From: Pavona decussata
Lineage: Eukaryota
DNA length: 64,000 nucleotides
Assembly (NCBI GenBank): GCA_977016875.1
Contig: CDRNST010000004.1
Coordinates: forward strand, 868,001-932,000
Direction: 5' to 3'
The translations under genes were made by a program, and so were the position numbers. The notes below the pieces were generated by a model. It was not told the DNA's origin, made no database searches, and worked only from the letters and a program-made list of their open reading frames with translations. Positions 1 to 58,005 of the stretch are shown here, in pieces. The first letter of the stretch is position 1. The number at the start of each line of letters is the position of its first letter.

Positions 1-535
1 TACACGACACCCATTGTTAAGACGTATGGGGAAGTAAGGAAGTACATTTTGCTGAAACTATGCAAATTTCACATCCCGTCAACCACTGGTCAATATCTCA
101 CCAAATACGCATCAGTTATGCACCACACTCAGAATATCAACTTGGACACCTCAGAATTAGCTGTCTTGTTGTCATGGCAACAGTTACTAGGGAAATGTCT
201 AAATACCTCATTAAGTTGCTTTTAAGGCATATTTTCCAAAGGAAAACTACTCAGAACATTAAATAACCCCTTCCAACTTGCTAGAGATCTCATATTTCAG
301 TGAACATGTCATATTATTTAGTCATAAAACAATCTTGCTTAGCAACCAAGGACTTGTAAATCAAAATGTCTTTATCCATGCAATGCTTGTGAACTTAAAT
401 TCCTTCAACACAAAAATTGCATCAATTGCGTGAGCAAGAATAACGGTCACAGCAGTGTGTTAAAGAAAGTAGGGCTGAACCATACGAATTAAAATAAAAA
501 CTACATGAATGTTAATACTCATGCATATCTTCCTC

Positions 536-1101
536 ATTAATTAAAAGGGATTTGCTGAAGCAAAGACATGCAAAAATTACAGAGATTTAGGGCTCGACGT
601 TTCGGAGTCATCTTGACTCCATTATCAAGAGAAAAAATCAGTTTGTGAACGCGGATATTTAAATAGGCTAGAGCTGAAAATTAACATATTAATAGATGGT
701 TAAACAAATACTTTTGCGCGAATTGAATCAGTTTGCACGTTCAGTTCTGGTTTCAGTTTGCGTATGAATAGCATCTCATGAACGAGGCAATCAAATTTGC
801 TGGTGCATTTCGCAAGAACTTGAAACAGTTCTAAAAAACGCTGTGGTATCTGGTCATTATGTTGGAGATGGTAGTGTTTGAAAATTGAAGACGACCCTCC
901 ATTGTCAACCAATAATGTGTAGTATACGAATTTAAATGTAACCTGTGCGATGCAGGATATGTGGGGTATACGCGTGGGCACCTGCATGAGCGCGTAGACG
1001 GACACAAAAGAAAGTCGTCTTCAATTTACAAACACTACCATCTTCAACATAATGACCAAGATAACTCCGAAACGTCAAGCCCTAAATCTCTCTGTAATTT
1101 T
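536..1101. mobile_element. Truncated, internally inverted Penelope-like retroelement (GIY-YIG end plus pLTR) inserted in the left Academ repeat
   Basis: Plus strand ~897-1058 encodes VVYEFKCNLCDAGYVGYTRGHLHERVDGH. Minus strand 700-895 encodes the endonuclease C-terminus EMLFIRKLKPELN. 569-617 is inverted relative to 1057-1105. A 14-bp duplication TGCATATCTTCCTC flanks it (522-535, 1102-1115). Confidence 0.85.
593..631 (-). ncRNA. Minimal type I hammerhead ribozyme (U3-A8 core variant) in PLE pLTR
   Basis: Minus strand reads CUC-UUGAUAA-U-GGAGUC-AAGAU-GACUCC-GAAAC-GUC-GAG: stem I CUC/GAG, 6-bp stem II, palindromic ACGU minimal stem III, GUC cleavage triplet. Confidence 0.8.
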
Positions 1102-1109
1102 TGCATATC

Positions 1110-2810
1110 TTCCTCGTTGTCCTCATCTTTATCTTCGTCTTCGTCTTCCTGTTCAAAAGAACACTTTGCACAGAAGGGACCAATTTGTCAACCTCTTAGT
1201 TGCCATCTTTGGCCATTTGGATTTTGATCTTCAAAAGACCTTTGAAAGGAATTCTTCTACAGATAGGTTTAATAGTTAGCACGCTTTATGTGTTGTTTAA
1301 GAGCTACTTTTGTTGGAGGAAGCTGATAAGCCTGCATTTTCCTGCTTATGCAGAACATCATATCTGATCTCATTTATTCCTTCTTCGCCACTGCCATTGT
1401 GCAACGGATGTACACGAAGTGCTCTACGTTTGCAATCCCTTCATCTCCTGGTGGCACTACTGCTTCACCGATACCCTCAAGGTTGTCTTTCACCTCTTGT
1501 TTTTCTATTACAATCTTTAAGCCTTTCTTCTTTCCTTGCCCATGCCAGTGAAGGTACCAACAGTGTCACTTGGCACACTGATGAGGTGAGATCTGCATCA
1601 TGTTCCACCGATCGATGATATGCATGCTGAGATAATTATTTGTCTGGTGGAAACAAGCTAGAACTTCGATATTAGTATCTGATGAGCTTATGGCAACTGA
1701 TGTGTGCCTATAGGACAAGGCATGATACGCTTGCAAAAACATCCAAGTGTTGGCATCTTCTTGGTTGCTCCAGAGCTGCAAGGCTACGCTGGGCACAATC
1801 GTTTCATAAACAACTTCAATTTTGGTATGGTTGTTTCCATGTGAAACATGGAGGGTATGAGCTCCAACCTCCTTGTCATACTTGCTAGTTGACCACTTAT
1901 TTATGAGAAAGTGCATAAGCCGGGGTTTCCTGGTGCCATTTGACATAAACGTCTTCCACTGGGGAGGGCAGGGCTGCTGGCGACTGCTTATGGCGAGGAC
2001 TCAACCTGTCCCTACCTCGTTTACTTCTTTCAGTGTTCTTTATTGACAAATCAGAATGCTGATCAGCAACAAAGACCAACCTTGTTGCCGTCCCTGTAAG
2101 CGCTAAAATTTCTGTTAGAAGCACCTCTGACAGGTCTGCAAAGCAATCAGGCACACTTTAGTGTTATCATTTGCAGCATTGCCATGGCATCCATGATGGC
2201 AGCCGTTGTGTTAGGCGGTATGCTTGTCAAGCACTCTACTCCATCTTTTGAAGGTTTCGAGAAATCTGCCTGGTTAGTTTTAGCCAGCGAGTCATGTGAC
2301 GTTGCCAGAGACCATGGGGAGAGACCAAGTTCATGTTTTAGTAGCTCTCGAAGATCAGAACTTCTCGCACCATGTCTCCCGCTTTCTCTCTTGCCTGTTG
2401 TGGTTCCCGCCATAATGTGCTTGTTCTTTCGCAAGCTATTACACAATGTTGCAATTTTTGTTGCTATTTCTCCCGGTTGCTGCAACCTTGGGAATCCCTC
2501 TTTTCTTTCTCTCTTCTCCCACATCCCTTATATTTCATACACCCATAGGCTTGAATAAAGCTATTTCCTCACCTTATGTGTATGCACAGCCCGGGTGTAG
2601 TGTTTTCATTCTAACAAACCAGCTTCAGAACCGGAGCCGACAATAACCACTTTCAACGAGTATATCAGCAAGACCAGCATCCCCAAACCAAACCAATAGC
2701 TGCTACGAAGGCGCAGACTGTGTGGAAGGAGCCCAGCCGAACTACCAAACATCTAAACTGCTCCCCCAAATGACTTCAAGCACTTTTGCATAAATTGCTT
2801 GATCAAGGAT
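1110..2810 (-). pseudogene. AcademX transposase/XPG(PIN)-like nuclease remnant (frameshifts, stops, deletions)
   Basis: Manual translation across frames gives LDQAIYAKVLEVIW, RLGSFH, GDAGLADILVESG..GSGS..KHYTRAVHTHK, HELGLSPWSLA, IMDAMAMLQ, SIKNTERSKR, NQEDANT (HEEADT-like), SSDTNI and LPPTKVALKQHIKRANY, then an acidic tail. Confidence 0.75.
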
Positions 2811-4339
2811 TAGTTTAAAAGAAGTTTGTGCATTTTCAAATGAAATACAGTCATAAAGTATTGATATATAAGGTTAGAAAAGATATAAACTTTCAAATGT
2901 GTTCTTATTTCAAAAAAGTCAAATGCAGTAGCTAGAGACGGAAGATAGTGTACGAGTCACAACTTGCCAAACTGAACTATAAAGATAACTCGTTGTAAAA
3001 TGGCCTTGGACGTTTTTCTGTTCTTGTTGATAAAATTTGCCATAACAGACTTGAAAACTCAATATTGCAAATGTTCACAGCATTGCATGTAAAAAGGGAT
3101 ACATTCAAAAGAGATATTGATGACATTCGCAAATTCACTGTTGCTAATTAAGCAAGATTCTTTTATAACGAAAGAATATTTCATGTGGAACAGTTCACTG
3201 AAACATGAGATCTTTATCAAGCTCGAAGTGATTGTGCGCCTTTCATGCACTGAGGCCTGTGCAAATGTTCTTTGGAACAGAAAGATGAAGATGAAGGTGA
3301 AGATGAGGACAATGAGGAAGATATTTATGAGTATTATTAACATTCGTTTAGCTTTTTTGAAATTCATGTGGTTCAGCCCTAGTTTCTTTAACACACTGCT
3401 GTGACTGTTATTCTTGCTTACGGCAATTGATGCAATTTAGTGCTGAATGATTAATTTCACAAGAATTGTATGGATAATGACATTCACAAGTTCCTGGTTG
3501 CTAAGCAAGATTCTTTTATGACAAAAGAATCTTACATGTCAGGATTGTTCACTGAAATGTGAGATCTCTAGCAAGTTGGAAGGGGCTATTTAATGTTCTG
3601 AGTAGTTTCCCTTTAGAAAATATGCCTTAAAAGCATCTTTATGAGGTATTTAGACATCCCTGGCAACCGTTGCCATGACAACAAGACAGCTTATTCTGAG
3701 GTGTCCAAGTTGATATCCTAAGTGTGGTGCATTATTGATGCATATTTGGTGAAATATTGACCAGTGGTTGATGGGATACGAAAATTCATAGTTTCAGCAA
3801 AATATGCTTCCTTACTTCCCCATACGCCTTAATTATGGGTGCCCTGTACCTTTATATCCTGTCGACAAGATAATAATGAAAGTTTCTCAAGTCAAAAAAG
3901 TCTATATTCGTCATAATGGAAATGTTTTGACTAAAATTTATAGATATCCGCTAATTAATCGAAGTTTTGATATATGAATTGGCCAGAAAAGTAAAACTCT
4001 GCATTTCTTCAATATCTCCTTGGCAACCGTTTCCATGGAAACATGAAAATGCATGACACATATTAAAAAATTTTGGGGATGGTGTAAAATGTATATACAG
4101 AAAATTTGAATAAAATTGGTTGAGTTTCAGCAGAGTTATGAATCATTTTATGTTGTGTGGAATTCTCAGGGAGCAAAATCCACCAGCCCACCCCCCTATG
4201 GAAATAGTCACATATCTCACTTAAGCACAGGTTACATAATTGGCAACAAGTAGATTTGTAGAATACAGGCCACAAGCTTTAATTTGATACCAAATTCACT
4301 ATGTCCCGTGGGGGGTGCAACGAAAATCATTTTTTCAGG

Positions 4340-4546
4340 CCTTGGCTCATGGACTATTACGTGCGTAAGCAAAATAAGAAGCGATGTGGGAGCCGCGTGC
4401 GTAAATGTGACAAGTTGAACAGCGCTCAGCTTTTTACGTTTACGCAAGCCGTTCATACACCGCTTCCTATTTTGATTACGTATGTAAAGCCAGCCCAGTG
4501 CACCACTATACGCACGTGAAATTTACGCAACAGTGGAAATCCACCT
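4340..4546. mobile_element. Partial Harbinger-like MITE
   Basis: One terminus ...aatttacgcaacagtggaaatccacc followed by TTA, plus repeated tacgtgcgtaa motifs. The other TIR was not found. Confidence 0.4.
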
Positions 4547-12110: not shown

Positions 12111-12641
12111 CTGAAGAAGATCAAAGTGTACAATTTTCATGAGGACATTGTGTAAGTCCCATATTTGGGACTGTGGCCCATAGAGTCGAATCTCCCATCA
12201 CCACTCCATACAGCGCTCTGGATAGATTTCAACTAGTTCAACAGTTTTGACCTGTAGTCCTCCCAATAATGAAGAACCACAGGAAACAGGAACTTTCATT
12301 GATGTAAAAAGTATGTTCTTGGGGAGGACACTGCCAAGCCCATATGCTTTAAAACCAGCAACACAAGACTTATTGAAGCTCCTGCCATTAGCACACCAAA
12401 ACTCAGTAATATGTTTCCAGCAGGGTATTTGCCCAGCACTACTGGCTGACTTCTCCACTGGAAGCACCTCCCACACACTTTACAGTTTTGTGTGAACACA
12501 GCCATAGTGCCACTTTTTGTCACGGTGATATGTGGCTTCCCCCTCCGACAAAGGAAACAAAACATAGAAAAGAGACTTAACAGCATGGAGTAAAAGGCTA
12601 TGAACTTTGGCTCATCCTCAACTTTGGTATCCGGCTCAACC
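12111..12641 (-). pseudogene. Kolobok-type DDE transposase exon (N-terminal catalytic region)
   Basis: WRSQPVVLGKYPAGNILLSFGVL...HMGL..RTYFLHQ and GDGRFDSMGHSPKYGTYTM. Bounded by CAG acceptor and GTTAGT donor. In-frame stop. Confidence 0.75.
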
Positions 12642-12913
12642 CTGTGTGATTCAAAAAGAAAAAAAAACCAAAATAATAAAAATAGTAATGTAGCCACATC
12701 ATCTGGAGAAAGAGCATTGCAAAAGATGTCTATATTTGATCAGCACTTGCAGCACAATCCAAATTTCAAATAAGCAAGAAACCCTTGCCTAAATTGCTCT
12801 CTATGCAGCTATATATGTAAACAAGTTAAAATTATTACATTTATAGACCATACAGCTCTAGCAGAGAAAACGTTGGAAGATTGAAAGAAAGCATGAAAAA
12901 CTTAGTATATTAC

Positions 12914-13373
12914 CAGATGGCAACTTAATGTATTGGTTTCTTATGGCCAAGGGACTTTTAGTAACCCAATGCATTACTCTTGTGACACTGCGTAATGCAA
13001 CATTAAATCTATCAGCAACAAGTCGTACACTCTCCTGGTTCGCCATGTACCAAAGGTAAATTAAAATTTGCTTCCTTGGGTCGATAGCATGTCTTCCGAA
13101 TGGGTTTCCAGCCGGTATGTTTCCCGTAGCCGTGACCTCGTTCACCACAATTTCACATGTTGCCCTTTGCATACGAAAATGAGCTTTAAATTCATCCAGA
13201 GAATACGTTGGTATCGTTTGCTCAAAATATCCAAGGATTCGATTTAACTTTCTCCTTGCAAATATGGATGCTGCAGCAGCCAAAACAATGGAATCATCGT
13301 CGTCTTCTCCAAAAAAATCATTTTCCAAGTCGTCCGCTAAAACATCTAACAGTACAGGAAGTTCAGCGGCCAT
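12914..13373 (-). pseudogene. PIF/Harbinger (HARBI1-like) transposase first exon
   Basis: YSLDEFKAHFRMQRAT, KQILIYLWYMANQESVRLVADRFNV, YIKLPS followed by a GTAATA donor. The downstream DDE exons are absent. Confidence 0.85.
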
Positions 13374-14350
13374 GTTTCTTGTTGATACGAACCCAGACCC
13401 CGGCCGACTGGCATCCGAAACTTCCCATCAAATGATACAGTTCAATCCGTTCTATTTCCTAAGTGCAAAAAAAGAGGAGTTCCATTTCCCCAGAAAAAAA
13501 CACTGAAAATTCCATTCAAATGGTAAGCATTCCAGGTTTTTGTTTTTTCCTCAGGTCGTTCCCCTTTTGATTAACTGGACGTCTAATTTCTGTCCAATAT
13601 TTTTGGGAAACTCTGTCTCTGTATTTCTTTCTGAAATAAATAAAGAATGGATAAGTGATTTAATTCATACACTTTAAGGCAACGTTTTCCTTTCATTGTG
13701 GGCTTAGGAAGATAACAAAATAATGATACACAATGCAGGTTAGCATGTGTGCCCCACAACACTGGCCTTTGTTACATGCAATATAATTCCATAGCATTCC
13801 TTTAACTATGTGAAAGTAATTTGCACATGCATTTATCACCCAAATTTTACAACATACATGGGACAAGCCTTATGGGTGGAGAAGTGATCAGGATAAAACC
13901 TTAATGCTGAGATCACTGGTTAAGTCATAATGAACAAAGATACTGCTGTGAGATTAAAATGGCAAAAAGAGAAAAGTGAAGCTCATATTTAAGACCTCGT
14001 ATACAAAGTAATTCTTGCCTTACAAACATGAAATCTATTGCAAAGAACCACTATTCACCTACTGTTATTGACGCCGGCTATTATGAGTAGTATTAGTCAT
14101 GGTTCCAAAGATATGCAGTTAAAAAGAAAATTCAATGCACAGTTAAGATCAAGTTAGGTAATGGTGCCTCCAGTAAAATATTGACATTTTCCCTTTCACA
14201 CAGCTGTAACTGATTGAAATGTGTAAGTAGCTATACTTTAAGTGTTGAAATTAATTTATAATAAATAGATGGTTAATGTAAAGCTCCTTTTATACTTAGT
14301 GAATAACATATTCAGTTTGTCAATAGCATGAATAAAGAAAAACTTTCTAA

Positions 14351-39169: not shown

Positions 39170-40040
39170 TCAGTTAAAAGCTGGCCTTCTAGGTAAAGTA
39201 GATCAGGCTTACTTTGACTGAGAATGCTGTTTTACCTGCTTCTTTGGCCGCTTTTAATTTTGGTAATTGCCTCTTTCTGGATTCCTGAATGGATTTTGGG
39301 TAATCTGGATAAATGCATACAGTGCTGTCTCTTAAACTTGTTGCACATCGTGTAATCATTTGTCTGTCACTGTAGCTCAAACAGTGGGCAATGATAACTG
39401 TTGGATTCTTGGTTCTTTTACTGCCTACGTAGTGAACACGTTGGAACTCTATTGCATCAGAATCTTCAACTTTCAAGGTGGAGCTTATGAAGGAGTGCAA
39501 GATGGACTCTGTGTCTTCATGGTCTGCTTCACTTTCAGTTGCTAAGGTTCCAGGAATACCCTCCAAAAGTAAATTCTCTCGTCTTAAATAGGCTTTCATA
39601 TATGTAAGCTGCCTATTAAGCCGAATTATTTCTTTAGTGGAGTCTTCTCTATCTGAAGCTTGAGTTGACACTAAAGTGTCATAAGACTTCAAAGTGAAAT
39701 TGACGCTTGCCTTTAGTTCGCCGATAGTTTCATCGACGGCTTTACTTTTACATTCTACAGACTCCACTCTACTCATAAGACGGTTTGCTTGTATCTCAAC
39801 TGTCTCCAGTTTTTTTAGTCTTATTAATTAAGGCTTCCAAACTGTTCAACTTCTGTAGTTTAGTAAGAATTTGCTGAATGTTCGCACCTATATCTTCCGC
39901 CATATTCGAAGCTTCGAAAACCTCGTCGCCTTCTGAAGAATTGTCTTATATCTCGGACACTTTTCAGCTGGCGTGGTGCTTTGGTTTTCGTTTTCACTTG
40001 AAGGTCTTTGTTTTCTTTTTGCTTTTTCCATCAAATTCAT
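39170..40040 (-). pseudogene. LINE ORF1 (L1-type coiled coil plus RRM/CTD); no ORF2
   Basis: YLRRENLLLEGIP, IEFQRVHYVG, VIIAHCLSYSDR, IYPDYPKSIQESRKR. Confidence 0.85.
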
Positions 40041-40098
40041 CAAATGAAAGAACTTAATACCTAAATTGTGTTCAGTAGCGCAGAGCTCAGGGCATGTC

Positions 40099-41168
40099 CT
40101 ACTCCTTATACATCGTGCCCAGTCTGTCAGAGGTATCAAATGATGCTGTGACAGATGATTCTGTGGCATATACAGATGATACTGTGGCCATATCCTTCAG
40201 CATGTCAGCTTGTTGACCAGAGACCGCATTGTCAAGATCATCAGCGAAGTCATCTTCCATAATAAGGAGAGAATCGATGTACTCCATACTCCCCACCCCT
40301 CTCCGCAATGCTCAAATGGTCAATTTCCGTACCATGCCCTTGCTGAGTGTGGCAATAAACTCCTGAAGACATCATGAAAGACAACGTCATTGATATGAAT
40401 ATGCATACTGGTCCCAACATTATAATTTTTCCATAAAAAGTACTGCTGTTTCTTGAAGTGGTAATGTCCAGGGTTTGAAAACTAAAGCAGTCTTTCAATT
40501 GTTGTAGTAGTTTGTTGAGGCAAGTCAAGATAACATAAATCAAACATATAACTGCAGTGCAAAATATGCGTTTTCTCCAGCAGCGCACGTGGGACAGTTT
40601 TGTAATCATATGTGTGAATGAAACTGAAAAGACGAGTTTATAAGTTTCATGGTTTGACAAAGTAAAAGTGTGACACTTGAAAACCGGTAATAGTACCTTC
40701 ACATCATTATGTTCCTTGGCTTTCTGCTGCTCTTCCCTCTGAGAGGTCTCGGTACTCGAGAGCTGAAAACCTTTGTTTCGCGGCCTCCGTTGCATTGCCG
40801 TCCGTGGATGAGTATTTATGTTTTGTAAATTCTGGAAACCGTGAAGTATCATGAGCAAACACAGATTCATTGTGACTTAGTCAACCACAAAAGAAGAAAT
40901 GCCATTATTCACAGCCAACGTACCTTATTTTTGCACGGTTTTTCAGTGGTTCCACACTGGCGTTGATCGGTGCGTGGGATATTGCTTCCTTTGCAAGGAC
41001 ATCCACAATTACCGTCAGGTTTTCTCTTGGTGCTACAAGAACTTTTGCACTTGCAAAAGGCTGGTGAGGGTTCCTTAACATTGCAAAAATAATAATTCCT
41101 GGTTTAGCTGTTTACATATGATCAGTAGCAAAATACATGCAAATATTTCAACTCACCGTCGAATTCAT
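40099..41168 (-). pseudogene. Four-exon Tesmin/TSO1 CXC-like Cys-cluster gene (likely transposon accessory gene)
   Basis: Exons 41157-41168 (MNST), 40924-41073 (CKCKSSCSTK..GCPCK...CGT..PCKNK), 40697-40831 and ~40099-40362. All GT-AG, all phase 0. In-frame TGA in exon 4. Confidence 0.7.
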
Positions 41169-41699: not shown

Positions 41700-42465
41700 C
41701 AATGGTCAATGAGGTGAAGTAATTATCCAGAAATATATTATATCCTAGTCTATGAAATAGTTCCACAAGTTTCAAAACAATCTTTAGAATCTTGTCCACA
41801 TCCCTTGCCTGTATAAACATTTATGTCTAACACATAGCCATTTTCAGAGTCAGCCAAAGTAAATTCCTTGAGGCCAAATCTTGCTGGTTTGTCCCTCACA
41901 TACTGCCTCCATGAAAGGCGTCCTTTAAACTTCACAAGGGTTTCATCCACTGACAGGTTCCTGCTTGGAACTGGTTTGTAATTAGTTCTAAGAAGGGCCT
42001 ATTTTTTTCCAGGTTGTCATATCCATCTTGACCTCTAAGAATTAATTGTGTATTGTTCACAAAATGTAGATACCTCAAAATTTGTGTAAACCGATGCCTT
42101 GACATGCTATTTTTGAAGAATGGTGTTTGAAGTATCTCATCAGTGGACTAGTAACTATGTATGGTAGGCTTGTTTACCAGCCCCATGGCTAAGATCAAGG
42201 CAATAAATGTTTTTATTTCATCTTTGTCTACTGCGTGCCAAGGCAAACAGTGTTTATCCGGGTTTTTGGCTCTCTCTTGGACAGCATACAAATTTGTTTG
42301 TCCCACAACTAGATCAAGCACGTCACCAGTAAAAAACAGACAAAAATAGCTCACTGGGTCTTTTTGATTCACTCCCATTCGAACTTTAGGGCCTTTGGGT
42401 TGGGTGAAAGGTAGGTCTGAATGCATCCTGATGTCTTCTACCCAAACAGCAGGGGCACCCAACAG
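41700..42465 (-). pseudogene. piggyBac transposase, N-terminal half
   Basis: PVSYFCLFF, QTNLYA, MSRHRF, VDETLVKFKGR..RQY..KPARFGLK, IFLDNYFTS. Confidence 0.9.
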
Positions 42466-42759
42466 ATCTTTTCGGTAAATTATCTGTTCGGAAGGTGCTT
42501 AATCCCCTACAATTTTCTAAAAATAATTTTTGCCTGGAACTTTCGTGATATGGGAAATTTAAGGCCTGGTGTTTTCGGATTGATAAAAATGTCGTTTCGG
42601 GTACCGAGAAAAGGTCAGCTAAGATTTTCGGAAAGGAAATAAGACCTAAGTTTTTTAGGAAATGGACAAAAATGCCCAAGTGATTTCGAAAAGACTCAAG
42701 TTCCCCTAGAATGACCGAACAGATAAGAATTGAAGATTGAAGTATGATGCTGTTTTCCA

Positions 42760-43280: not shown

Positions 43281-44260
43281 CTATTTCATTCTCCTTTCTG
43301 TACCTGTCTTTGAGAATCGCCACAGCTCAGTTGTATCCTTTGGCAGAATGCAGCAATGGTTCAATTGTTTTCCTCTTTCACTTTTGTGAAAATTTCTATA
43401 AATGCATTCATGCCTTTTGGCTGTTTTTCCAGCCCAGGGTAAAGAAGATTTTAACAGATCTCTTTCTTCTTCATCCTGCTCTTCAGCTGTGGACCTTTTT
43501 CTTTTCCTTTTTCTCTCTGTTCTAGCCTCTGGGCTCAATTCTTGACTCTGTTTCACCAGCACCAGTCGGGGCAGCAGCAGAACTTGAAGCACTTGATCCT
43601 GCTTCTGTTACATTATGTAGCATTACCACATCCCTGCAGCCAAGGACTGTATTTTTTTCTTCAAAGAAATCAGGGTGCCATCCGTGTCCTCCCGTTTTCT
43701 TACAGTTCCAGTCCTTAACACTCTTCTTTTTCTCTATCAGGTACTTTATTTTGTTATGACACTAATTGGCAGTGTGCTTGGTGGAATTTGCGATTTATCT
43801 CTTGGGGAATCTCATCCCACACCTTGCATACATCTTTACTTTCGAGCCATTCATGTCATTTATCCCACAAGCTGACCAGCGTTTTCTGTCGTTCTTTCAA
43901 CAAGTGTTGTATTGTTTCTTCTGAACAGTGCCAAGGGCAGCGCTTTCGTAGATTGCGTCATCCACTTCAAGTGAGTTTGGACTGCCTGAGCTGTCGCTTG
44001 CTATATCTGGGCTGTTGGGCAGGCACTGTTTACCAGCTAAAACCCCACTCGGTCCTGGCAAAGGCTGTTGATAATACTGCACATGCTGTAGACTCATGGG
44101 GAAAGCACCAGGGAAATAATAGAAGGGGAACCGTCCATCCATGTTGGAATAACGTGAAGTTTACAAAATGCCCGTCAATTCCAGAGTTCACAAACAGGTC
44201 AAAACGATTAGTGTGGACATCTCCAGAAGCGGCTTCTTTTGTCTTCTCCAATGTTTTTAA
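43281..44260 (-). pseudogene. Myb/SANT-like DNA-binding ORF (Harbinger ORF2 type)
   Basis: Across frameshifts: WLESKDACKVWDEI, YLIEKKKSVKDWN, FFEE..VLGCRDVV, then a basic/acidic tail. Confidence 0.6.
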
Positions 44261-44499
44261 AATCTGCCTGCCTCACCCGAAAACCACAGTGTCTGAAGTT
44301 TTGACCAGTTGTCCAAACTTTTTATTATTTGTGAAATGCCGGTCGCATTAGGAATGGTGATGTGATGACAGATTTGTATGATTAAGTAAACTAAAATGTG
44401 ATCAAAATTTCCCTACTGCAACCTGGGCCCAGCTTTTGTAATCGAATGCTCAAACAGGTAAACCGAGGACTTACAGATTTACATGTATTTACATGTTTG

Positions 44500-44616: not shown

Positions 44617-44649
44617 ACTTAGGTCCTCCCGTCATGGTTGCCACGTTTC

Positions 44650-45458
44650 CTGGAGGAAGAGTGTTTGTTGGGTGTGCCAAACCAGAAAACAGTTGCTTTT
44701 ACTGTTCAGGCACAGATGTACATCACATGTCTCACATCTGATTATTGATCTGGCTGGCCTTGGTCTCTTCTCATTTCTGTATTAATGAGACAAACGAGCA
44801 GAACAAACAGTACCAACCCGTGAAGGGCCAATAACTAGAATGTGAAGGCCAATATTTTGCAATCTTGGTTCCAGAGTTGCATTTACTCTTCTCCTCCTTA
44901 GAGGGATGTTGTCCTTGGCGACATACCCGGACATCAGGTGTGTTGCCAATGTCATTGCAAGTTCCTTGGATGTGAGCCCCTTATCAACTTGTGTAGCCTT
45001 AAAGATTAGAAATGCATTGTTTATCGAAGTTTCCAATTGGTGAAACACCACTTTGGGTGGCCAACGCTTGCAGTTCCACCCAACACTGTAGTAGCAGTTA
45101 TCCTGGTCCGCGTGGTCAATCCCACACATATACTTGTTATAATCATGCAGTAATGGTGGACATGGCACAGTAGCTCCACCCTCTTACTTCTCCGTCTAAC
45201 CTCCCTTTGTTCTTGTGGGGTATCTCTTGAATGTTCTGGACTGTGTACAGTACTTAGGAAGTAGAAAGGCTTCTCATGCCATGATACCGCCAGTATTTTT
45301 GGGCACCTTCTCCAGGAGCGTGTTCCTCGAGCTGGTTTTGGTTTCTGTGGAAAGATGAGGTCCTTTGGAAAATGTTTGTTATTAGCTCTCACAGTACCGA
45401 GGCAATCTATACCTCTGGCTAATAGCTATTGAGCCAAAATGGGGCTTGTGTAGAAATG
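44650..45458 (-). pseudogene. piggyBac transposase, C-terminal half
   Basis: FYTSP, CLGTVRANNK, YNKYMCGIDHADQ, KRWPPKVVF..SINNAF, and a C-terminal Cys-rich remnant. Confidence 0.88.
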
Positions 45459-48129
45459 TGCATTTCATGTAAGGTAAAAATTAGGGCGATATTTTAGTTA
45501 ATCGCAATTTTGAGTGTAATTTTTTCCACGGTGTTATTTCCGAATTTGCACATTTTTGCGCGAGCTCATTCTCCTTTTTTTTTCTATTCAACGTGAAACA
45601 AGAGTTTGGTGAGATTTGCGTGTTGGTTGTAGGTTGATGCACATAAAATTGTGTTTGACGTTTTTCTCAGCAGGCCTCGAATTTTTCCACTATACCCCGC
45701 TGGAAAACTAGTTTGGGCAAACTGACCACCTTCCTTCCTGGAAAATCAAATCCCTTGCGTGGGAGGGGGGAGGGGGTATGGATATTTTTTGGAACTACAC
45801 ATTTTGTTCACGGTAATCCAGCCCTTAAAAATAATCCAGAATTAAATTTGTTTACCTTTATATCTGGTCATATAGGGCAAAGAAATCATTCCATTAGTAT
45901 TAAAAGTCTTTTATTAGGTGAGGGACTGGGAACATCCACCCCAAGGAAAAATAGGAAGATAGGAGGCAGCCACAAACAGCTGCATAACATTTGAATCCTC
46001 AAAAACAAAAACAAAAAACAAAAAATGATGACGCCTCCCTCAAGGACATACCCAAAATTTGCCTTCCTTGTTTGATTCCTCCTTTATCCAAATACCTCAA
46101 ATCTTTGTGAGGCTAACTCAAGTCTAAGTGGAAATCTGCTGCCCAGGCTGTCAAACCCTGACCCTGTTTACCTTGTTTATGACATGACTTAATTTTTCGA
46201 AAAAGAAAAAAATATAAATTTATTACTTGCTAATCCGTTTTAACAATTAGTAGGTAGTCAGAGAAAAACAGACGCATTCCTTCCCCCACCCACCCTCAAT
46301 CGGGGAGAAACGCGTGAAGAGCCTAAGAGTCACTGTCTGTATTACAATTCAAACACCATTCTAAACTATTATAAATTGAAGCCACCTTTTGATCAAACCA
46401 ATGGCATTAATAGCCACCTCCATCGCCATATCCACAAGTTAACGATAGTGTCACTTTGATTTTTAGGAAATGTACTCATTAGATTTTTTCCATTTTTTGT
46501 ATCCAGAAAAACTCCCAAAACACTGACACAGTTGCACTATTTTCATGTAATTTTAACAGAGAGATCTCCTTTAAATATTGATTTTGCATTTTAATGTTTT
46601 GTGAAGGTACCCTCTGTTAGATTTAGGTTTCTCTTTGTAGGCAAGTTACACTTTTAGGGAATTATTTTCATGCTAAATGGCACGAAATTCTAATGAGCGG
46701 TTCCTTAGAAAACAGTTCATTTCCACGAAAACAACCAGTCGCAATTTTTTGGACAAATGCGCATGCGTGGCTTTAATTGGGTTTCATGGCAAAGATGAAA
46801 AGCACTCAAAAGGTCTTGGTGAATGACTTTTTTGCTTGGAAAGAAAAGAAAAAGAGTCCAGAAACGAGAAACGTAGTTATTTAGGATCAAAACTTAACTT
46901 TATTATCCATTTCATGTGAAATTGAGGGATCACTTTATCGACCGCCGTATTTGCATACCGCAACCCTAGCGCGTGCTTATAGCATTACTAACAGAATCTG
47001 TAAAGTGTGCGCAAACTGTGTTCGGCCACCTTAACCTTTTCTACCAACTGTTCTGCGAAAATGTTGCGGCAAGAACCAATTCTTCTTTGGCGGCACTTGT
47101 GCCATTTGTCGTTTTGTCAGGGATTCTCAACAGTGACTACCAATTGATTGGCCACATGGATTTATAGTTTGTTGATTTGCCATTGGATACGTGCTGCAAC
47201 AAACACAAGAAAATACTCTCAATTGATCTTTGAATTGAAAAGCAAACTTAGGTTTCCTTGACTTACCAAACCTCGCAAGTAAAACTCTGTTGGAGTATCG
47301 CTTAAATCCACGCTGTCAAAAACGTTTAAACTTAAAATAATCAGAAAAATAATTTTATGGGGAATGCTGCTTATCTGATTTCTTTTTAAACTGTTGAAAC
47401 ATTAAAACGTGAATTGAAGTCCCTCTGTTATTTTTGTTTTCTTTTTTAGGAAGCTTAGTGAATTAGAACCGTTATTCGCAGTTCATGTCATCTTATACCG
47501 GATCATTTTATTGGCTTCTCAATATCAAAAATCCCGAAATATAAGATCAACGAATAGCTTAACTGCAGCAACATGTTATGGCTCAAACAATTCTTGCTGT
47601 GTGATTTCAATACCAGTTATCTTATAATTTCGTGTAATGTCAGTCTCAAGGTTCTAGGAAAAGACATTTCCGGTTGAAGTGCGAGAAAAAACTTCCATGG
47701 AACTGACTAAGTGCTGAAGTTGCATTTTAGTTGTCTAGGTCTAGCACATATCGTTACAAACAACTATCTTAATTTCTAGATTGTCAAGGCTAACTGCTAT
47801 TATCTGTGCGTCTAGTAGACTGGATTATAATTGGACAGAATTAAAATAAAATTGTTGAAGACGTTATCTTGACCTCTCCAGTCTCTTCACCTTTGTTCGT
47901 CCAGAAAACCTTGAATAACCCCTCGTCTAACCCCTTTCTCCCTTTTAATGTAGTATTTGAGTCTTGCCCATGTAGGCTGTTTCTTGGCGACGGTCCACTG
48001 GGCCTAAATTCATCCTGCTAGTCAAAAGTTAAACGGAAACAAACGTGTAGCTCATAAGCAGTCTTTTAAACTTGAAAAAGTGACACCCTCAAAGTTGACA
48101 GTCCTAACTAGAATGCTAGCCTATAAGTC

Positions 48130-51110
48130 AAATTTTTTTTGAGTGGATCTACGCAAAAGTGGCTGACTGTCGGACTGAGAGGCACGAGTTTGATCCTCTG
48201 GAACAGGAACAGGATTGCTTGAACACGACAGATCAGCTTGGTCCAAGAGTTTCGGTAGAGCCGGATGAGGAGCGTGCACACTTGGAGCTGTAGCTGGAAG
48301 CTCTTGTGAGCACTCTTTGTTAGCTAGAGAGCTGAAACCACTGTTTCGAGACTCATCACTGTCATGGGTGATAACTGGTCGCCTCAGACTCTTGAAGAAT
48401 GATGCATTTCTTGTAACTGTGCGGTTTTTTTATTTTTTGCCGTGATCATACTGCCCTTCTTATCCACAGCTGTCAGAGGAGTGGGGTCATAAACAGTTCC
48501 TCCTTTTCATACAGAAATTGGCCTCTTGACCAACACAGTTTCAGCGGGGGATATAGTGCAGGGTTTCACGTAGGTCTTGTTGTCAGCATGAAGCTTGATC
48601 TTGGACTTCTGAGAGGAATCATGTTCGCGGATGATCTCAGACACAGGATCTATATGGTTGGCTTGTGGAAGTTTGTTGCAAACAGGGCGTTGTAACAACA
48701 ACACAGCAGAAGCAACACTGGTGGTTGAATGTGGCGTGGTGCGCTAATTACGCAAAATAGCTTGCAGCACCTTTCTCCAATTTCTCCCATCTGTTTTAGC
48801 AGCCTTAATGCATTTCTTTAGCGTTTTTACAAATCTCTGCAAATCTCCATTGGCCCTTGGCCAGAGCGGAGTGACTTTGTGATGTTTTAAACCAAGCACA
48901 TGAGCAAACTTAGCAATTTCTTCTCCATTGAATGGTGGATCATTATATGACTTGATGACACGCGGAGTTCCAAATGTAGCAAACAGCTGGTCTAGCTTGG
49001 GTATGACAGCACTGGTAGACGTAGATGACACCGGTTCCACAACTGGATATCTTGAGTAATCATCAACCACTAGAAGCAGGGTCATGCCGTCCACATGTGC
49101 AAAGTCAATGCTCAGTTCAAATGGGTTGTCTGGTAGTACAGACATTTCAAGTGGTTCTCTAGTGTAGATTGGGGTAATAACTTGACATGGTGAGCAGGTC
49201 TTAATCTTCATTTCCACCATCTTGTCCATGCATGGAAACCACACCTCCCACAGGAGAGCTTTTGTCTTTACTATGCCCAGATGGCTTTCGTAAAAAATAT
49301 CAACCATTCGCTCTTGCAATACAGCCAGTACCACAAGACGATCTGATTTCAGCAGGACAGTGTCTGTACAAGTTAGTTGATCTTTTACATGTGCATAGCG
49401 TGACAGCTCAGATAGTGACACGTCAGGCGGGGCTTTATGCCAACAGTTAGACTTGACCGCAGACATAACAGCTTGGAGTATAGGATCCTTTGTAGTTGCA
49501 GTTTCTATCTCTGACAATGTGATGGCTTCTGGTACTGCATTCCTTGCGATGAAAGAAATGTGTCCCTCAGATTCTACCTCATAGTTGTGGAATTCTGGAT
49601 CTCCAACAGGGTGTCTCGAAGCATAGTCAGCTGGATTTGAGGCACCTGGGCGATACTCTACAGTGGTACTCTACATATTGCTGCAGCTCCATGAGCCAGC
49701 ATTCAATCCTGGTAGAGGGCTTGTTGAATAGGGCGAGACGGGGTTTGTGGTCGGTGATAACCTTGAACTCCTTGCCATAAACAAACAGGTGAAAGCGTTT
49801 GATTGCCCAGTAAATTGACAAAGCTTCACAATCAATTTTGAGGGTATCTTGCTTGTGTGGGAGTAAGCGGACATCTGGCATAATGCAGCGGTGTCACTTC
49901 TTTATTCGATTCATTTTCTTGGGTCAGGACAGCACCTAAGCCAACAGGGCTACCATCAACAAAGATGGAAGTAGGTTTCTTGGGGTTGAAGTACCCAAGA
50001 GTCATCTTGACTGATAATGCTTTTTTTAGGCATTCAAATGATGACTGCTTTCTTCTGTCCATTGCTAACTCAATCCATCACAGGTCAGCTGCCGAATAGG
50101 TCTAGTAATAATTGCAAAGTCCTTGATGAACCTTGAGCAGAATGCAGCAGAGCTAAGGAGGCTTCGTACTTCTGATACGGTGGTTGATGGGGCAATGCTT
50201 TGAAGAGCTTCAACTTTACTTGGATCAGGTGACATGCCCTTTTCAGAGAACACATGGTCAAAGAAAAGCATGGTGGGAACTCGAAGCTGACACTTAGGTA
50301 AGTTGATCGTCAGATGATCCTTAGATGTTGGTCATGGGTGTCACTGTCTATGCCACCGACATAGATATCCTCACGGATGTTCTCAACACAAGGAATACCA
50401 CAATCAAGTCACTCACTTTCCTCTCGAAGACTTCTGCAGCGCAATATGGACCAAAGTTAAGAGGCTTGTAACGGAACAACCCAACATGGGTGGAGAATGT
50501 TGTCAGAGGTCTTGAGTCAGAGTAGAGCGGAAACACTTTGAAGCCATTTACGTTTGGGCACGACATCATCAGTGATGAAAACAATATGCCGTTCTCTGAT
50601 GATAGCTTTGTGTAGGAACCGCATGTCAACACAGATTCTGATTTCATTCGTCTTCTGGGGTTTGGGTACAACGACAATTGGCGAAACCCACGGGGTTAGG
50701 CCCTCAGCATGTTTAATGATGCCCTCATTCTCAAGCTGCCTCAGTTTCTCTTCTACTTGTTTTTGGATATGAAACGGGATGCGACAGTGAGGCTGTGCGA
50801 CTGGCTTGATAGATTCGTCAACATGTATGCGTACAGGTTTACCTTTGTACTCACCCATTCCACTAGTTAGACTAGGAAAATCCTTGAGGAAATCTGGGGC
50901 ACCAGGTGGCAAATTTACAGGAGGTTGTTCAACCATGCTGACAGCTTTGATGAGATTCAATTTCTGTGATGTTGTCCAGCTAAGTATAGAACCTGATGAA
51001 CCCTCTGCAACATAGAATGTTTCTTCCGATGAGCAATGATCGGTAGCAATGTTGGCGCGGAGTTTGCCACACAGATTGAGCAGTGGTGTTGCTGCGGCAG
51101 CCAAATTTTT
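48130..51110 (-). mobile_element. Ty3/Gypsy pol (RT-RNase H-integrase), degenerate; LTRs not identified
   Basis: PVAQPHCRIPF, WVSPIVVVPK, IRICVDMR, TFSTHVGLFRYK, FVDGSPVGLGAVL, VITDHKP, HLGIVKTK..C..CQ, VVDDYSRYP, WPRANG, in RT-RH-INT order. Confidence 0.93.
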
Positions 51111-51972
51111 CGTACTGATGTTCTTCACTGCTTTTTCAGTACACACATGTTCGATGACCTCTCCCAATTTTGGATCTCCAATAAAGATCTATGAAAAAGG
51201 GAAAATTCGACCTTTTAGTAAAAGTTACAAGCTGAAATTATATCCGAACAGTAGTTTTCCAAGCTTACCTTCACAACTGATTTCTCTTGTTCTTGAGGTA
51301 AGTACATACGTTCTTGAATTTTCTCCTCCATGGTAAAGGGAATACCCTTTCTTCGATTTCCTGCTCTTTTTTTTTTCTTCTTAATGGGTGAAGCTGAGGG
51401 ATCTCCGTGAAGATTTGCCTGTCTCGTTTTTTGAGCGTATCGCGTCTTGGTCTTCTTTGTTTCGCTTCGCTGATGGCGTAACACCAGTCAGTGATCTTAT
51501 CGCTGTGGATCTGTGATCCAGGAGAATGCTCCAATGGGTCAATAGATTATAAGCGCTGAATACGAGTGCACGAAGCGCACAACTTGTTGTGCACAAGGAA
51601 GGCAAGACGGTTTTGAAAAATTATTTCCCTTGTTCAATGAGTGGCCCAGTCTTGAAATTTTGTTCGCTAAAACAACACTGTTGCCCAAGAGTAATTAATA
51701 ATTCCTTAAGCGTCCTCACTCATCCCTAGCTGTACTTTAGCATCCTTACTGATCCCTAGCCAAACTCAAGCGTCCTAACATGTGTAGCCTACCTAAAATC
51801 TAACTTCGTTACAAGATATTATTTTGACCATAAAAGGAACTCCGGAAATTATAGCTATATCTAAACCAAAATTGCAAGAAAAAAAACATTTATAGTATAA
51901 GCATACCGGGTTATGTTTTTTTGTAAATACTAATTCACCAACAAGTGCAGGAGGCGTCGGCCTTTATATGGT

Positions 51973-55450: not shown

Positions 55451-55711
55451 CTTTAACGGTACAAAGTAATAAAGCATTTGTATAGATTTTCATATACACT
55501 GTACAGTATGTGATTAATAGACCTGGGCACCAGGGGACAGAAGGAGGTTCACCCAAAGGAAACTATTATGGAGATGCACACTGGAGAGGGAACAGCAGTG
55601 GATGGTTTAAGATCTTGGGCAGAGGCCATCACTACTGCACAGGACAGAGATTTTTTAGAAGCTAATTCCATGCCCTAATCCAAAAGTAGGAAAAATGAAC
55701 TGATGACGACA

Positions 55712-55950
55712 ATGCAAAAATTACAGAGATTTAACGCGCGACGTTTCGGAGTCATCTTGACTCCATTATCAAGAGAAAAAATCAGTTTGTGAACGCGGAT
55801 TTTTAAATAGGCCAGAGCTGAAAATTAACATATTAATATGTTAACACATATGTTCTGGTTTCAGTTTGCATATGAATAGCATCTCATGAATGAGACAATC
55901 AAATTTGCTGGTGCATTTCGCAAGTATGTGAAACCGTTCTATAAAACGCT
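55712..55950 (-). mobile_element. Second copy of the PLE 3' end seen at 568-842
   Basis: Near-identical atgcaaaaattacagagattta...gacgtttcggagtcatcttgactccattatcaagag... with an internal deletion. It abuts the BEL element. Confidence 0.9.
55737..55775 (-). ncRNA. Minimal hammerhead ribozyme, second copy of 593-631
   Basis: Same UUGAUAA / GGAGUC:GACUCC / GAAACGUC core. Stem I is CUC/GCG, with one mismatch. Confidence 0.7.
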
Positions 55951-58005
55951 AGTAGACTTAATACATTTCTTTTTGTTGCTTCCAACCCCTTAGCCTTGTT
56001 GGCTATATGCTGAAAGTTGAAATGAAGGGTATCGTTTTCACAATCCCGAGCTAGACCCAACACCTTCTCTCCCTTCGTTCCACCCTGGGGTTCTAGTTTC
56101 GACTTGGCATAAGTCTCTTCGTCCTCGAGTCTACCCACTTCCCGGGTTGTTTTGTTTCTCTCGCATGTGCTGATCATTTCCCTTAGTCCCAGGTCATTGG
56201 TCTTCCACTTTCTCAGGGTAAATCCCCCCTTGGCCATTCGCTCCCTTGCGTTCTTGTAAAGGGTAAAGGTTTTATCAACTGTTCGTTCCCCAGTCACTAA
56301 ATCATTTACATAGAATCCCTCCATCATTCTTTTCACAAATTCAGGGTCTACTTCTGCATAGGTAGCCAGATGGTGTCTTATCGTCCCATTCAACAAAAAG
56401 GGTGAGGCATTTAACCCAAAAAGGACGCGATAAAACCTGTACACTGCAACACTCAAATTACTGTCACGCATGTCTTCAACCCACAAAAACCTCAAACTAT
56501 CGCGATCTTCTGGTTCCACAGCTACATTCAAAAATGCCTTTTCAATGTCCCCCAGTAGTGCAATTTTGTTCTCCCTAAACCTTACAAGAATATCGAATAA
56601 GAAGGGATTCAGTGATGGCCCCGTATGTAAACAGTCATTTAGGGAGGTCCCATTCTTGGTTTGTTTCGACGAAGCGTTGTAGACAATCCTTAGCTTCGTG
56701 GTCTCTGCATCCCTATGAATAACTGCATAGTGGGGTAAATAATGGACGTTCCCACCCGGCTTTTCCAATTCGGACACTTTTTTCGATCACCCCTGCGCTT
56801 AGCTGTTCCTTTATGATCGAATCGTATTCGTTCGAAACTTCTGGTTCTCTCTTTAGTCTCTTCAGCTGACCTTTCATGCGCGACACGCTGTTTGCAAAAT
56901 TACTCGGAAGGGGGTCATGCCCTAGTTTCCACAGTAGCTTGACCGAGTACCTCCCCTCTAAAAATTCTATTTCGTTCTCGAACGATTCATGCACTTCGTT
57001 GCTACTTTTTATGCCTAAACTTTCTAGATCCCACAATCTGCTAACTTCACGGTCTAAACTAGCTTTGTCTAGACCTGCACTGTCTTGCGATATAAGTTTA
57101 CTGACACTTCCTGAACACTCGCTTCGCTAAATTCATATCGCCTTTTTAGGGGACCCGATAACACCCATCCCAGTTCAGTTTCTATAGTGACGGGCTCCTC
57201 CTACTCCCCCCGTACCGTTCGACCACTTTGAAATTCCCACAAGTAGTCCGCACCTTTTAGCAGGCCAATTTCGAGCTCTTCTTTAGATTGACAGACGTCA
57301 GAAAACCAAAGGTCACGCAAGTGCGGGAAGTCGTTTTTGACAACCTCAACATGCTCGTTGCTTATGTGTGAGGTTTCTGGCACAACATAAGTTTCGAGCG
57401 CCTGCACACGACTGCCACGAAGAGGCTTTATGTCAAAACGTACAACATCTCGCAGCCCTGATTCTTTGCCTTTCTGGCCAAAAGTACTAATCGTGATCCA
57501 TTCCTTTCTTTCTACGGGTAACTCGTATTTGAGAGCCGCTTTAGCAGTCACAAAAGATCGATGACTTCCAGAGTCAAACAAAACTCTAACCCTCCCTTGC
57601 GAACCCCCCTTAAGGAATGTTTGGGCTGTCTGGAGGGCTATTCTACATTCAGTACCCACAAGTTGAGCGCTGATGTTATTCCCGGGCCGATCGCCATTAC
57701 CTCCCGTTAGTCTATCTTGATTCCCCCCCCCTCCCCCCAAGGCCTGTGGTTTGGCCATGCACCAACAAGAATTATGTTGTCCCTTACATAATTTACATTC
57801 TATTGTTACTTTTAGGACTGTGTGCCGCTTAACAAGTTCAACTTTCTTCTCAGCTTCATAGCTGTTTAGGCACTCGTCAACATCAGGAAGGACTCCCGTT
57901 AGAAATCCTCGATGGCCTGCTCTAACTTTCCTCTTGGACATTCTTTAATCCGGCTATCGATGGACCAGATTTGCAGAATTCTTTTAACCCCGCTCCGCTG
58001 GTTCA
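55951..58005 (-). mobile_element. BEL/Pao element (deleted gag, protease, RT)
   Basis: MSKRKVRAGHRG, RVLFDSGSHRSFVT, HYLPH.AV, TTKLRIVY, SLNDCLHTGP, DIEKAFL, FGLNASPFLL, FYVNDL, LRKWKTN, KVLGL. Confidence 0.92.

Follow-up and report, generated by a model that had tools for sequence, protein, structure and literature searches.

A gene-poor array of transposable element relics co-oriented on one strand in the coral Pavona decussata, a possible unistrand piRNA locus

Introduction

Does a stretch of coral DNA in which relics of unrelated transposable elements (TEs) lie mostly on one strand represent a unistrand piRNA cluster? The question is raised by a locus of Pavona decussata, of which a stretch of 64,000 nucleotides (hereafter the window) was analysed. 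Trap-type piRNA clusters immunise the host through insertions that land in the right orientation; the established examples come mainly from Drosophila and mosquitoes, and to our knowledge cnidarian piRNA clusters have so far been defined by small-RNA read density only. The flam-like clusters of Drosophila extend over 227-1085 kb and were found through their strand bias, which is carried by Gypsy/ERV elements only (PMC10643416). In Nematostella vectensis 402 of 457 piRNA clusters are unistrand (PMC5731801). Reef corals possess 1U/ping-pong piRNAs and 47-107 proTRAC clusters per species; the clusters predicted in three corals, including a Porites, were reported as TE-poor, which was unexpected and led the authors to suspect a mapping or annotation problem (PMC13343488).

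Results

The minus-strand bias of TE relics in the window, proposed in an earlier note, is real and was confirmed by two strand-symmetric tests, ORF counts and Pfam matches. Stop-to-stop ORFs of at least 120 aa numbered 7 on the plus versus 29 on the minus strand of the 64-kb window, and 5 versus 25 (p=3.2e-4) within positions 1-58005 when each ORF overlapping a longer one was dropped. Every ORF of at least 70 aa was then compared with Pfam by an identical procedure for both strands (cut-off E<=1e-3). Thirteen families, almost all of them TE domains, were matched by the 111 minus-strand ORFs, whereas none of the 87 plus-strand ORFs matched any family. The minus-strand matches comprised DNA transposon domains (DDE_Tnp_1_7 five times, zf-C17orf113) and retroelement domains (Peptidase_A17, RT_RNaseH(_2) and RVT_1 twice each, rve, Integrase_H2C2 and Asp_protease_2); zf-TRAF/RING came from a host gene, not a TE. 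Orientation under this unbiased annotation thus departs from 50:50. However, the 24:6 fragment count given previously shrinks to 8 minus and 1 plus (p=0.04) when only homology-supported, independent units are considered, with approximately 10 further minus-strand and 2-3 plus-strand units recognised by long ORFs alone. Among the original labels hAT, BEL, the minus-strand Penelope-like elements (PLEs) and the plus-strand one at 38.1k, two piggyBac copies, Gypsy and Harbinger were verified, while Pfam did not recover Academ, YqaJ, P-loop, Kolobok, OTU, LINE ORF1, CXC, Myb, RAG1-like, Ulp1 or BEN.

The following DNA transposon relics were found in the window.

1..4357, minus strand: DNA transposon of ~4.9 kb with ~1.05-kb terminal inverted repeats; no family assigned, orientation from ORFs alone
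12299..13427, minus strand: putative Harbinger/PIF-like fragment; two ORFs of 147 and 189 aa
26358..31730, minus strand: hAT-type (FAM200/ZBED5-like) transposase relic, from Pfam and public-assembly annotation
26996..29585, no strand assigned: 2590-bp insertion nested in the hAT relic; joint 26995->29586 in runs X1, X6 and X12
41753..42498, minus strand: piggyBac transposase fragment 1, N-terminal half; three frameshifted ORFs, profile 1-188
44785..45425, minus strand: piggyBac transposase fragment 2, C-terminal part; DDE_Tnp_1_7 profile 224-349 (E=4.2e-5 and 5.2e-5)

The arms of the first element, which give an inverted self-match of 86.5% over 1070 bp, extend from 515 bp before the window to position 538 and from 3311 to 4357. 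Its minus-strand ORFs of 125-144 aa (1569-2000, 2150-2527, 3062-3436) matched no Pfam family, and numerous genomic copies at 85-97% identity have the identical layout. The Harbinger/PIF-like assignment is a lead, not proof: the fragment matched no Pfam family, and an ESM Atlas feature search returned HARBI1/DUF8040/Plant_tran clusters at 0.95, with ~203/256 features shared. The limits of the hAT relic were set from RNA and DNA contigs of an uninterrupted variant. It carries frameshifts, an N-terminal ORF (30176-31105) and a C-terminal dimerisation ORF (26508-27155), with Pfam matches to zf-C17orf113 (E=3.8e-6), DUF4371 (E=1.8e-3) and Dimer_Tnp_hAT (E=3.6e-3), and a public assembly annotates the same ORF as FAM200-ZBED5_RNase-like. 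The nested 2590-bp insertion is missing from the variant in both RNA and DNA contigs, which have 189 other letters in its place. The ORFs of piggyBac fragment 1 matched DDE_Tnp_1_7 with E=1.1e-9, 1.8e-7 and 2.3e-13; since the C-terminal fragment 2 lies upstream of it on the minus strand, fragment 2 is a separate insertion.

Retroelement relics were identified as follows.

32661..36908, minus strand: BEL/Pao LTR-retrotransposon relic with Peptidase_A17 pieces, split by a PLE
33755..35575, minus strand: PLE nested in BEL in the same orientation; RT ORF 34814-35575 (RVT_1, E=2e-7)
38031..38663, plus strand: PLE-type ORF of 211 aa, the sole verified plus-strand TE fragment
47983..51188, minus strand: Ty3/Gypsy relic; RT 50520-51188, RNase H 49630-50077, integrase 48747-49670
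55902..57944, minus strand: young LTR-retrotransposon fragment; aspartic protease 57204-57944, RT 55902-56786

The two Peptidase_A17 pieces (36642-36908, profile 2-39, E=6.2e-4; 32661-32924, profile 54-134, E=4.8e-19) follow each other along the profile as expected of a single minus-strand BEL element interrupted between them. The PLE within it is present in 25 or more copies across the genome (89-93% identity), with terminal segments of ~220 bp, and contains a weak GIY-YIG-type ORF (33998-34264; T5orf172, E=7.7e-3). The plus-strand PLE ORF has no Pfam match of its own; among its 82 relatives, the named ones stemming from Porites lobata and P. evermanni, several carry PF26215 and one carries PF26215 together with RVT_1, and DNA copies occur at 91-93% identity. 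The Gypsy relic matched RT_RNaseH_2 (E=1.5e-14), RT_RNaseH (E=3.4e-12), rve (E=1.9e-8) and Integrase_H2C2 (E=3.5e-8), its RT matched the Ty3 RT in PDB (E=1.8e-4), and genomic copies of 47983-51085 are 88% identical. Asp_protease_2 (E=8.1e-5) and RVT_1 (E=2.3e-4) were matched by the young LTR fragment, of which 55948-57809 has at least 5 genomic copies at 95-97% identity.

Long ORFs without an assigned family occupy two further places.

39192..40876, minus strand: two adjoining long ORFs of 212 and 208 aa; orientation from ORF length alone
43719..44348, plus strand: long ORF of 210 aa, earlier called "CACTA ORF"

The former pair showed a weak Pfam match to the PUMA_CC coiled coil and no PDB or Atlas relative. 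The latter, at most a candidate TE, had no Pfam or PDB match and a single weak relative (35% identity).

Position 58005, the last of the stretch described earlier, is not a boundary. The bias persists in the same direction across 120 kb of flanks, with plus:minus ORF counts of 9:19 and 9:22 (~70% minus in both) in the two 60-kb flanks and 23:67 over the total of 184 kb (p=3.8e-6). Minus-strand domains of the flanks included DDE_Tnp_1_7 (six), zf-RVT (three), GDSL esterase (two), RT_RNaseH, RVT_1, MULE, Tc5 HTH and DUF7869, as opposed to one zf-RVT, one HTH, one helicase and a host Fz exon on the plus strand. The array (contig C4:808-992 kb, at least 184 kb) is gene-poor, with only three host-gene pieces found, and the window is its most biased part. 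It holds relics of at least ten superfamilies (piggyBac, hAT, Harbinger, MULE, KDZ-like, pogo, BEL, Ty3/Gypsy, Penelope-like and LINEs), and the minus-strand co-orientation spans piggyBac, hAT, Harbinger, MULE, LINE, PLE, BEL and Gypsy. The fragments are degraded and of mixed age (80-97% identity to other copies), and some are nested: a PLE in BEL, pointing the same way as its host, and one insertion in hAT.

Chance, with a few multi-ORF elements and nested insertions happening to face one way, could be invoked because no more than 8:1 window units have homology support, several ORFs belong to one element, and thousands of windows were scanned. However, the flanks, which lie outside the selection of the finding, point in the same direction both in their ORFs and in their TE units (~13 minus versus 3 plus), the combined units of window and flanks number ~21 minus to 4 plus (p=9e-4), and at least ten superfamilies are involved without internal repeats, so that we consider chance and non-independence very improbable. 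A tandem or segmental duplication array was also rejected: self-BLASTN of the 184 kb revealed just 67 short HSPs, the longest of 1.3 kb, and no collinear blocks or repeated units sharing order and orientation. Local duplication therefore does not explain the bias.

The earlier note had offered a large intron of a plus-strand gene as its alternative. An ORF and Pfam screen, which short exons could escape, revealed no protein gene that crosses the window on the plus strand. A single host exon was seen on this strand in the 184 kb; it encodes an Fz domain and lies 18.2 kb before the window. Within the next 300 bp come a transmembrane tail, a stop codon and AATAAA, indicating that the gene is compact and finishes ~17 kb upstream of the window, and no Frizzled 7TM domain was found on this contig. 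Plus-strand coding exons flanking the region and spliced across it were thus not found, the Fz exon being terminal and the window having no plus-strand Pfam match. A further host gene lies past position 58005, inside the biased domain.

62385..63765, minus strand: host TRAF-like gene fragment; RING and TRAF zinc-finger exon 63265-63765, TRAF zinc-finger exon 62385-62669

Its exons matched zf-TRAF (E=6.6e-6) together with RING families and a second zf-TRAF (E=1.6e-5); no MATH domain was found downstream of them. The intron alternative finds no support.

These observations also bear on a broader explanation, in which Pol II would transcribe the array from the plus strand as part of a long unit unrelated to piRNAs, either a giant intron or a lncRNA, and ordinary selection would act against sense TEs. 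TEs in animal introns are preferentially kept antisense to transcription, an effect that is usually modest, most pronounced for LTR elements and LINEs, and confined to the gene span. The bias of all TE classes is expected from a generic terminator or splice-site filter, and the Fz gene is a plus-strand host gene in the domain, opposite to the TEs. Nevertheless, that gene ends upstream, no plus-strand window ORF has a Pfam match, the TRAF-like fragment inside the domain is on the minus strand, RNA contigs over 26-32 kb showed no canonical GT..AG joint, and a span above 180 kb with a ratio of ~5:1 is far above usual intronic bias. Altogether, we regard such a unit as unlikely. Like intronic bias, the array shows retention opposite to the presumed transcription; unlike it, the array includes cut-and-paste transposons and extends over at least 184 kb, for which the screen detected no spanning gene.

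Contigs of three RNA runs, which carry no strand information, were compared with 6 kb of the window (26001-32000). The contigs of two studies over 26-32 kb derive from a ~94% identical hAT-like variant that lacks two insertions, and not from a long precursor, and the locus-specific stretches 27001-27800 and 28401-29400 had zero RNA depth in two metatranscriptomes. Only 5-6% of the words sampled across 22-32 kb occurred in the RNA runs. The RNA evidence is neutral towards the piRNA-cluster reading.

A regional polarity apart from local transcription, imposed over hundreds of kb for instance by the direction of replication forks or by chromosomal domains that influence insertion or retention, would agree with the weaker but equally directed bias of the flanks. 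The genome-wide co-orientation check was mixed. Relics of piggyBac, DUF7869 and MULE are ~80% co-oriented at distances up to ~800 kb, ~50% at 0.8-1.6 Mb and less than 50% beyond, but no concordance with them was seen in hand counts for Tc5 HTH (18:24), Harbinger (11:11) and BEL (5:3 and 2:3), and restriction to one pair per contig left only 18:9 (p=0.12). Moreover, the 184 kb show no GC skew, and we know of no mechanism that orients cut-and-paste transposons by replication direction. This explanation is in our view distinctly unlikely.

Discussion

On its anatomy, the region may tentatively be read as a unistrand piRNA precursor locus. It would form one long plus-strand transcription unit, and insertions would be retained or lost by orientation as a consequence of that transcription, sense insertions bringing terminators or splice signals or yielding no antisense RNA. 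The unit likeliest to act in this way would be a unistrand piRNA precursor, giving rise to small RNAs antisense to all TE families in the array. Against this reading, AATAAA on the plus strand is not depleted beyond the expectation from base composition. Cut-and-paste transposons in introns are usually only slightly biased in orientation, and their co-orientation here counts for the piRNA-cluster reading.

The flamenco-like cluster proposed earlier is partly supported: the array fits it in TE diversity, nesting and one-strand orientation, but not in class specificity. The 184 kb form a large gene-poor array of diverse, fragmented and nested TE relics, and these are co-oriented on one strand (0/87 plus versus 13 families minus; 5:25; 23:67). 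The bias is not limited to a controlled TE class such as Gypsy/ERV, every class lying on the minus strand. This implies a difference from flamenco in the strict sense, but none from unistrand clusters as a group; a generic transcription-unit filter fits a bias in every class as well. The co-orientation of all classes, host genes of both strands within the domain (Fz plus, TRAF-like minus) and the reported TE-poverty of coral piRNA clusters (PMC13343488) weigh against a strict flamenco analogy. Flamenco and flam-like clusters (PMC10643416) resemble the coral array in being gene-poor TE-relic arrays of hundreds of kb with nested or truncated insertions of mixed age and a strong one-strand bias. 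In contrast to their Gypsy/ERV bias, the coral array co-orients DNA transposons, LINEs, PLEs, BEL and Gypsy, contains host genes of both strands, belongs to a cnidarian and is known from DNA alone. Like the clusters of Nematostella and reef corals it belongs to an anthozoan, a class with a functional PIWI/ping-pong pathway in which most clusters are unistrand; those, however, are defined by small-RNA reads and not by TE orientation, the coral ones were reported as TE-poor, and no antisense-trap architecture has been described for them.

A well-assembled 184-kb array with co-oriented relics of at least ten superfamilies offers a concrete place to ask whether corals use traps. If the locus makes no small RNAs, it would point to some unexplained filter that acts on transposon orientation at large scale. 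A wider proposal, which we regard as rather doubtful, is that this coral has dozens of loci of 0.2-1 Mb in which relics of unrelated superfamilies accumulate in one orientation, and that these would be giant unistrand piRNA trap clusters directed against all TE classes, with the window as one arm of such a locus. If true, flamenco-type trap architecture would be no insect speciality and may date to the cnidarian-bilaterian ancestor.

Transposon-derived ORFs of the window lie predominantly on the minus strand

Orientation was assessed with strand-symmetric tests, the identical procedure being applied to plus and minus. The window corresponds to contig C4, 868001-932000, and with 60 kb added on either side the analysed span covers C4:808-992 kb. 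In the window, 7 stop-to-stop ORFs of at least 120 aa fell on plus against 29 on minus; once ORFs overlapping a longer one were dropped, positions 1-58005 retained 5 and 25, respectively (p=3.2e-4). When all ORFs of at least 70 aa in the window were compared with Pfam, none of the 87 on plus gave a match at E<=1e-3, and the 111 on minus gave 13 families, nearly all of them transposon domains. We localised every minus-strand Pfam match and added the Ty3 reverse transcriptase (RT) via PDB, HARBI1 via Atlas and the longest plus ORF via a homologue search. The homology-supported independent TE units of the window amounted to 8 on minus and 1 on plus.

Homology-supported TE units in the window
12.3-13.4k, minus: Harbinger-like unit (Atlas lead to HARBI1)
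26.4-31.7k, minus: hAT unit
32.7-36.9k, minus: BEL unit
33.8-35.6k, minus: Penelope-like element (PLE), nested in BEL
38.0-38.7k, plus: PLE-type ORF, the sole plus unit (homologue search; named relatives in Porites lobata and P. evermanni)
41.8-42.5k, minus: piggyBac fragment 1
44.8-45.4k, minus: piggyBac fragment 2, separate from fragment 1
48.0-51.2k, minus: Ty3/Gypsy RT-RNase H-integrase fragment, including a PDB match to Ty3 RT
55.9-57.9k, minus: young protease-RT fragment

About 10 more units on minus and two or three more on plus were counted from long ORFs with no assigned family. PDB sequence searches returned no usable match for two long plus ORFs, nor for the ORF at 40253-40876, which also had no match in the Atlas search. 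A public metagenome-type record of the same region, carrying ATG-to-stop ORF calls, was the source of one Pfam label.

These counts confirm the strand bias, which is larger than the earlier note had described. The note's direction and rough ratio hold, whereas its tally of 24 minus to 6 plus fragments overstates the verifiable independent ones, and its labels Academ, YqaJ, P-loop, Kolobok, OTU, LINE ORF1, CXC, Myb, RAG1-like, Ulp1 and BEN were not confirmed by Pfam on ORFs of at least 70 aa. Across 4-60 kb the plus strand carries more T than A, consistent with A-rich TE sense strands on minus; poly(A)-signal asymmetry was uninformative after allowing for base composition.

Several repeats accompany these relics. 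Tandem repeats occupy 23580-23955 (188 bp x2 at 99% identity), 21211-21521 (111 bp x2.8) and 59114-59355 (a 24/48-bp unit x10); the 111-aa minus ORF at 21303-21635 is spurious because it is created by the 111-bp array. Positions 16001-18000 show a strong local AT skew of -0.27, with plus T-rich; here a plus ORF (16571-17523) overlaps a minus one (16823-17910). The stretch 58100-61800 consists of a multicopy repeat, its copies being 80-96% identical. Neither Rfam nor tRNA scanning gave a match in the window.

The bias continues through both flanks

The earlier note had ended the bias at 58 kb. ORFs of at least 120 aa nevertheless remained skewed in both 60-kb flanks (plus:minus 9:19 on the left, 9:22 on the right), giving 23:67 over the whole 184 kb (p=3.8e-6). 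In Pfam comparisons of flank ORFs of at least 85 aa, the minus families included DDE_Tnp_1_7 (six), zf-RVT (three), GDSL esterase (two) and, among others, RT_RNaseH, RVT_1, MULE/Mutator, Tc5 HTH/BrkDBD and DUF7869; the only plus matches were one zf-RVT, one HTH, a frameshifted RecQ-like helicase and a host Fz exon. The helicase, among the few plus-strand coding relics of the biased domain, lies in flank segment L014 (3506-4718, window about +107.5 to +108.7 kb); it is intronless and split into four consecutive ORFs with a DEAH motif and Helicase_C, and may represent either a processed pseudogene or a helicase carried by a TE.

Counted as TE units, the 184 kb hold roughly 21 on minus vs 4 on plus (p=9e-4). 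With the flanks repeating the direction seen in the window, chance co-orientation is improbable. Self-BLAST of the 184 kb yielded 67 short matches only and zero collinear blocks; local duplication, whether tandem or segmental, is therefore ruled out as the source of the co-orientation. Fragments share 80-97% identity with their nearest genomic copies, which implies that insertions of many ages are present.

The bias affects cut-and-paste transposons as well as LINEs, PLEs and LTR elements, extends over 184 kb, is not due to duplication and recurs in nested insertions. For these features taken together, the simplest reading is a long plus-strand transcription unit, running opposite to the TEs, inside which insertions would be retained according to their orientation.

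Orientation of transposon relics elsewhere in the genome

As a proxy for the genomic background we used the coordinates and strands of TE family matches across the host assembly (602 Mb, 1180 contigs). Matches to piggyBac, DUF7869 and MULE relics cluster together and are co-oriented at ~80% up to ~800 kb, at ~50% at 0.8-1.6 Mb and at <50% further apart. A regional polarity of non-transcriptional origin could produce such a pattern; however, one pair per contig gave only 18:9 (p=0.12), and the families checked later did not follow these relics (hand counts: Tc5 HTH 18:24, Harbinger 11:11, BEL 5:3 and 2:3), which makes this explanation unlikely. Against so mixed a background we do not claim a genome-wide rule of co-oriented neighbouring TEs, and the all-family bias seen here is therefore a local property.

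Hand reading of the matches revealed five co-oriented piggyBac relic clusters, at which the DUF7869 and MULE relics are mostly on the same strand.

Co-oriented piggyBac relic clusters
Contig C195, 2.80-3.23 Mb, minus: 7/7
Contig C13, 0.59-1.78 Mb, plus: 5/5
Contig C90, 0.35-0.85 Mb: 5/5
Contig C67, 1.70-1.82 Mb: 5/5
Contig C250, 0.88-1.12 Mb: 3/3

A class of similar loci, recognisable by their piggyBac relics, may thus exist. DUF7869 and the piggyBac DDE may form one element type, since at three loci the former follows the latter on the same strand, 1-5 kb downstream. Tandem arrays of TE-containing units were also observed: on C273 at 5.126-5.167 Mb, seven identical copies of a piggyBac fragment are spaced 5.87 kb apart, and on C139 at 5-43 kb, five identical copies of a Harbinger DDE are spaced 9.29 kb apart.

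Host genes within the biased domain

Two host loci were recognised.

Host gene features
L008:1786-2700 = C4:849786-850770 (window -18.2 to -17.2 kb), plus: compact Fz-domain gene, type-I membrane protein
62385-63765, minus: TRAF-like gene fragment, RING and two TRAF zinc-finger exons

The predicted Fz-domain protein comprises a signal peptide, the cysteine-rich Fz domain, a Ser/Thr/Pro stalk, a transmembrane helix and a short tail. Its exon is the sole plus-strand host exon in 184 kb; the next 300 bp hold the transmembrane helix with its basic stop-transfer tail, then a stop codon and AATAAA, and contig C4 contains no Frizzled 7TM domain. The gene does not span the window, which rules out the window as one of its introns. 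The large plus-strand intron that the earlier note offered as an alternative is accordingly unsupported, with the proviso that an ORF screen would miss short exons; a long plus-strand unit of another kind than a piRNA source, be it intron or lncRNA, is unlikely.

At least 73 Fz-domain exons occur in the genome, many in tandem arrays (e.g. C436 6.33-6.40 Mb). No MATH domain was found downstream of the TRAF-like fragment. A 147-bp N gap occupies 61863-62009, beside the repeat at 58100-61800.

Comparison with unistrand piRNA clusters

For a long plus-strand unit that keeps insertions by orientation, unistrand piRNA clusters would be the best-known precedent. The array is a plausible candidate for a unistrand piRNA source, tentatively put forward and partly supported by its anatomy. 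Flamenco-like Drosophila loci span 227-1085 kb and were identified by the same strand-bias signature (PMC10643416), unistranded clusters make up 402/457 in the anthozoan Nematostella (PMC5731801), and 1U/ping-pong piRNAs are present in corals (PMC13343488). However, coral piRNA clusters are reported to be TE-poor (PMC13343488), which counts against a strict flamenco analogy. Moreover, only Gypsy bears the bias at the flamenco-like loci (PMC10643416), whereas every TE class is biased here, and host genes lie on both strands within the biased domain.

RNA contigs match an uninterrupted hAT copy

In RNA runs, 5-6% of sampled words of 22-32 kb were present. Positions 26001-32000 were compared with contigs of two coral metatranscriptomes, each from its own study, and with those of one RNA-labelled and one DNA run. 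RNA contigs of 2.8 and 4.2 kb aligned to 26358-26995 and 29586-31730 at ~94% identity, lacking both the 292-bp high-copy insertion and a 2590-bp insertion at 26996-29585. Because both insertions are missing and the DNA run contains the same variant with roughly half the local depth, these contigs derive from an uninterrupted hAT-like transposase copy and are ruled out as a precursor spanning the array. In the two metatranscriptomes, depth was zero over the locus-specific stretches 27001-27800 and 28401-29400. The RNA evidence is neutral for this array, as contigs are strandless and small RNAs invisible in them.

The uninterrupted copy may represent an allele, or else a hemizygous paralogue or active copy. 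Two independent coral metatranscriptome studies show expression of this hAT/FAM200-ZBED5-like variant; three 1-nt indels in 29.6-30.0k separate it from the copy in the window, so that its reading frame may still be open. Very high-copy short repeats lie at 26066-26357 and 31730-32000 (word depth up to ~89,000 / 350,000, summed contigs, DNA run), the former being the 292-bp insertion, which looks MITE-like.
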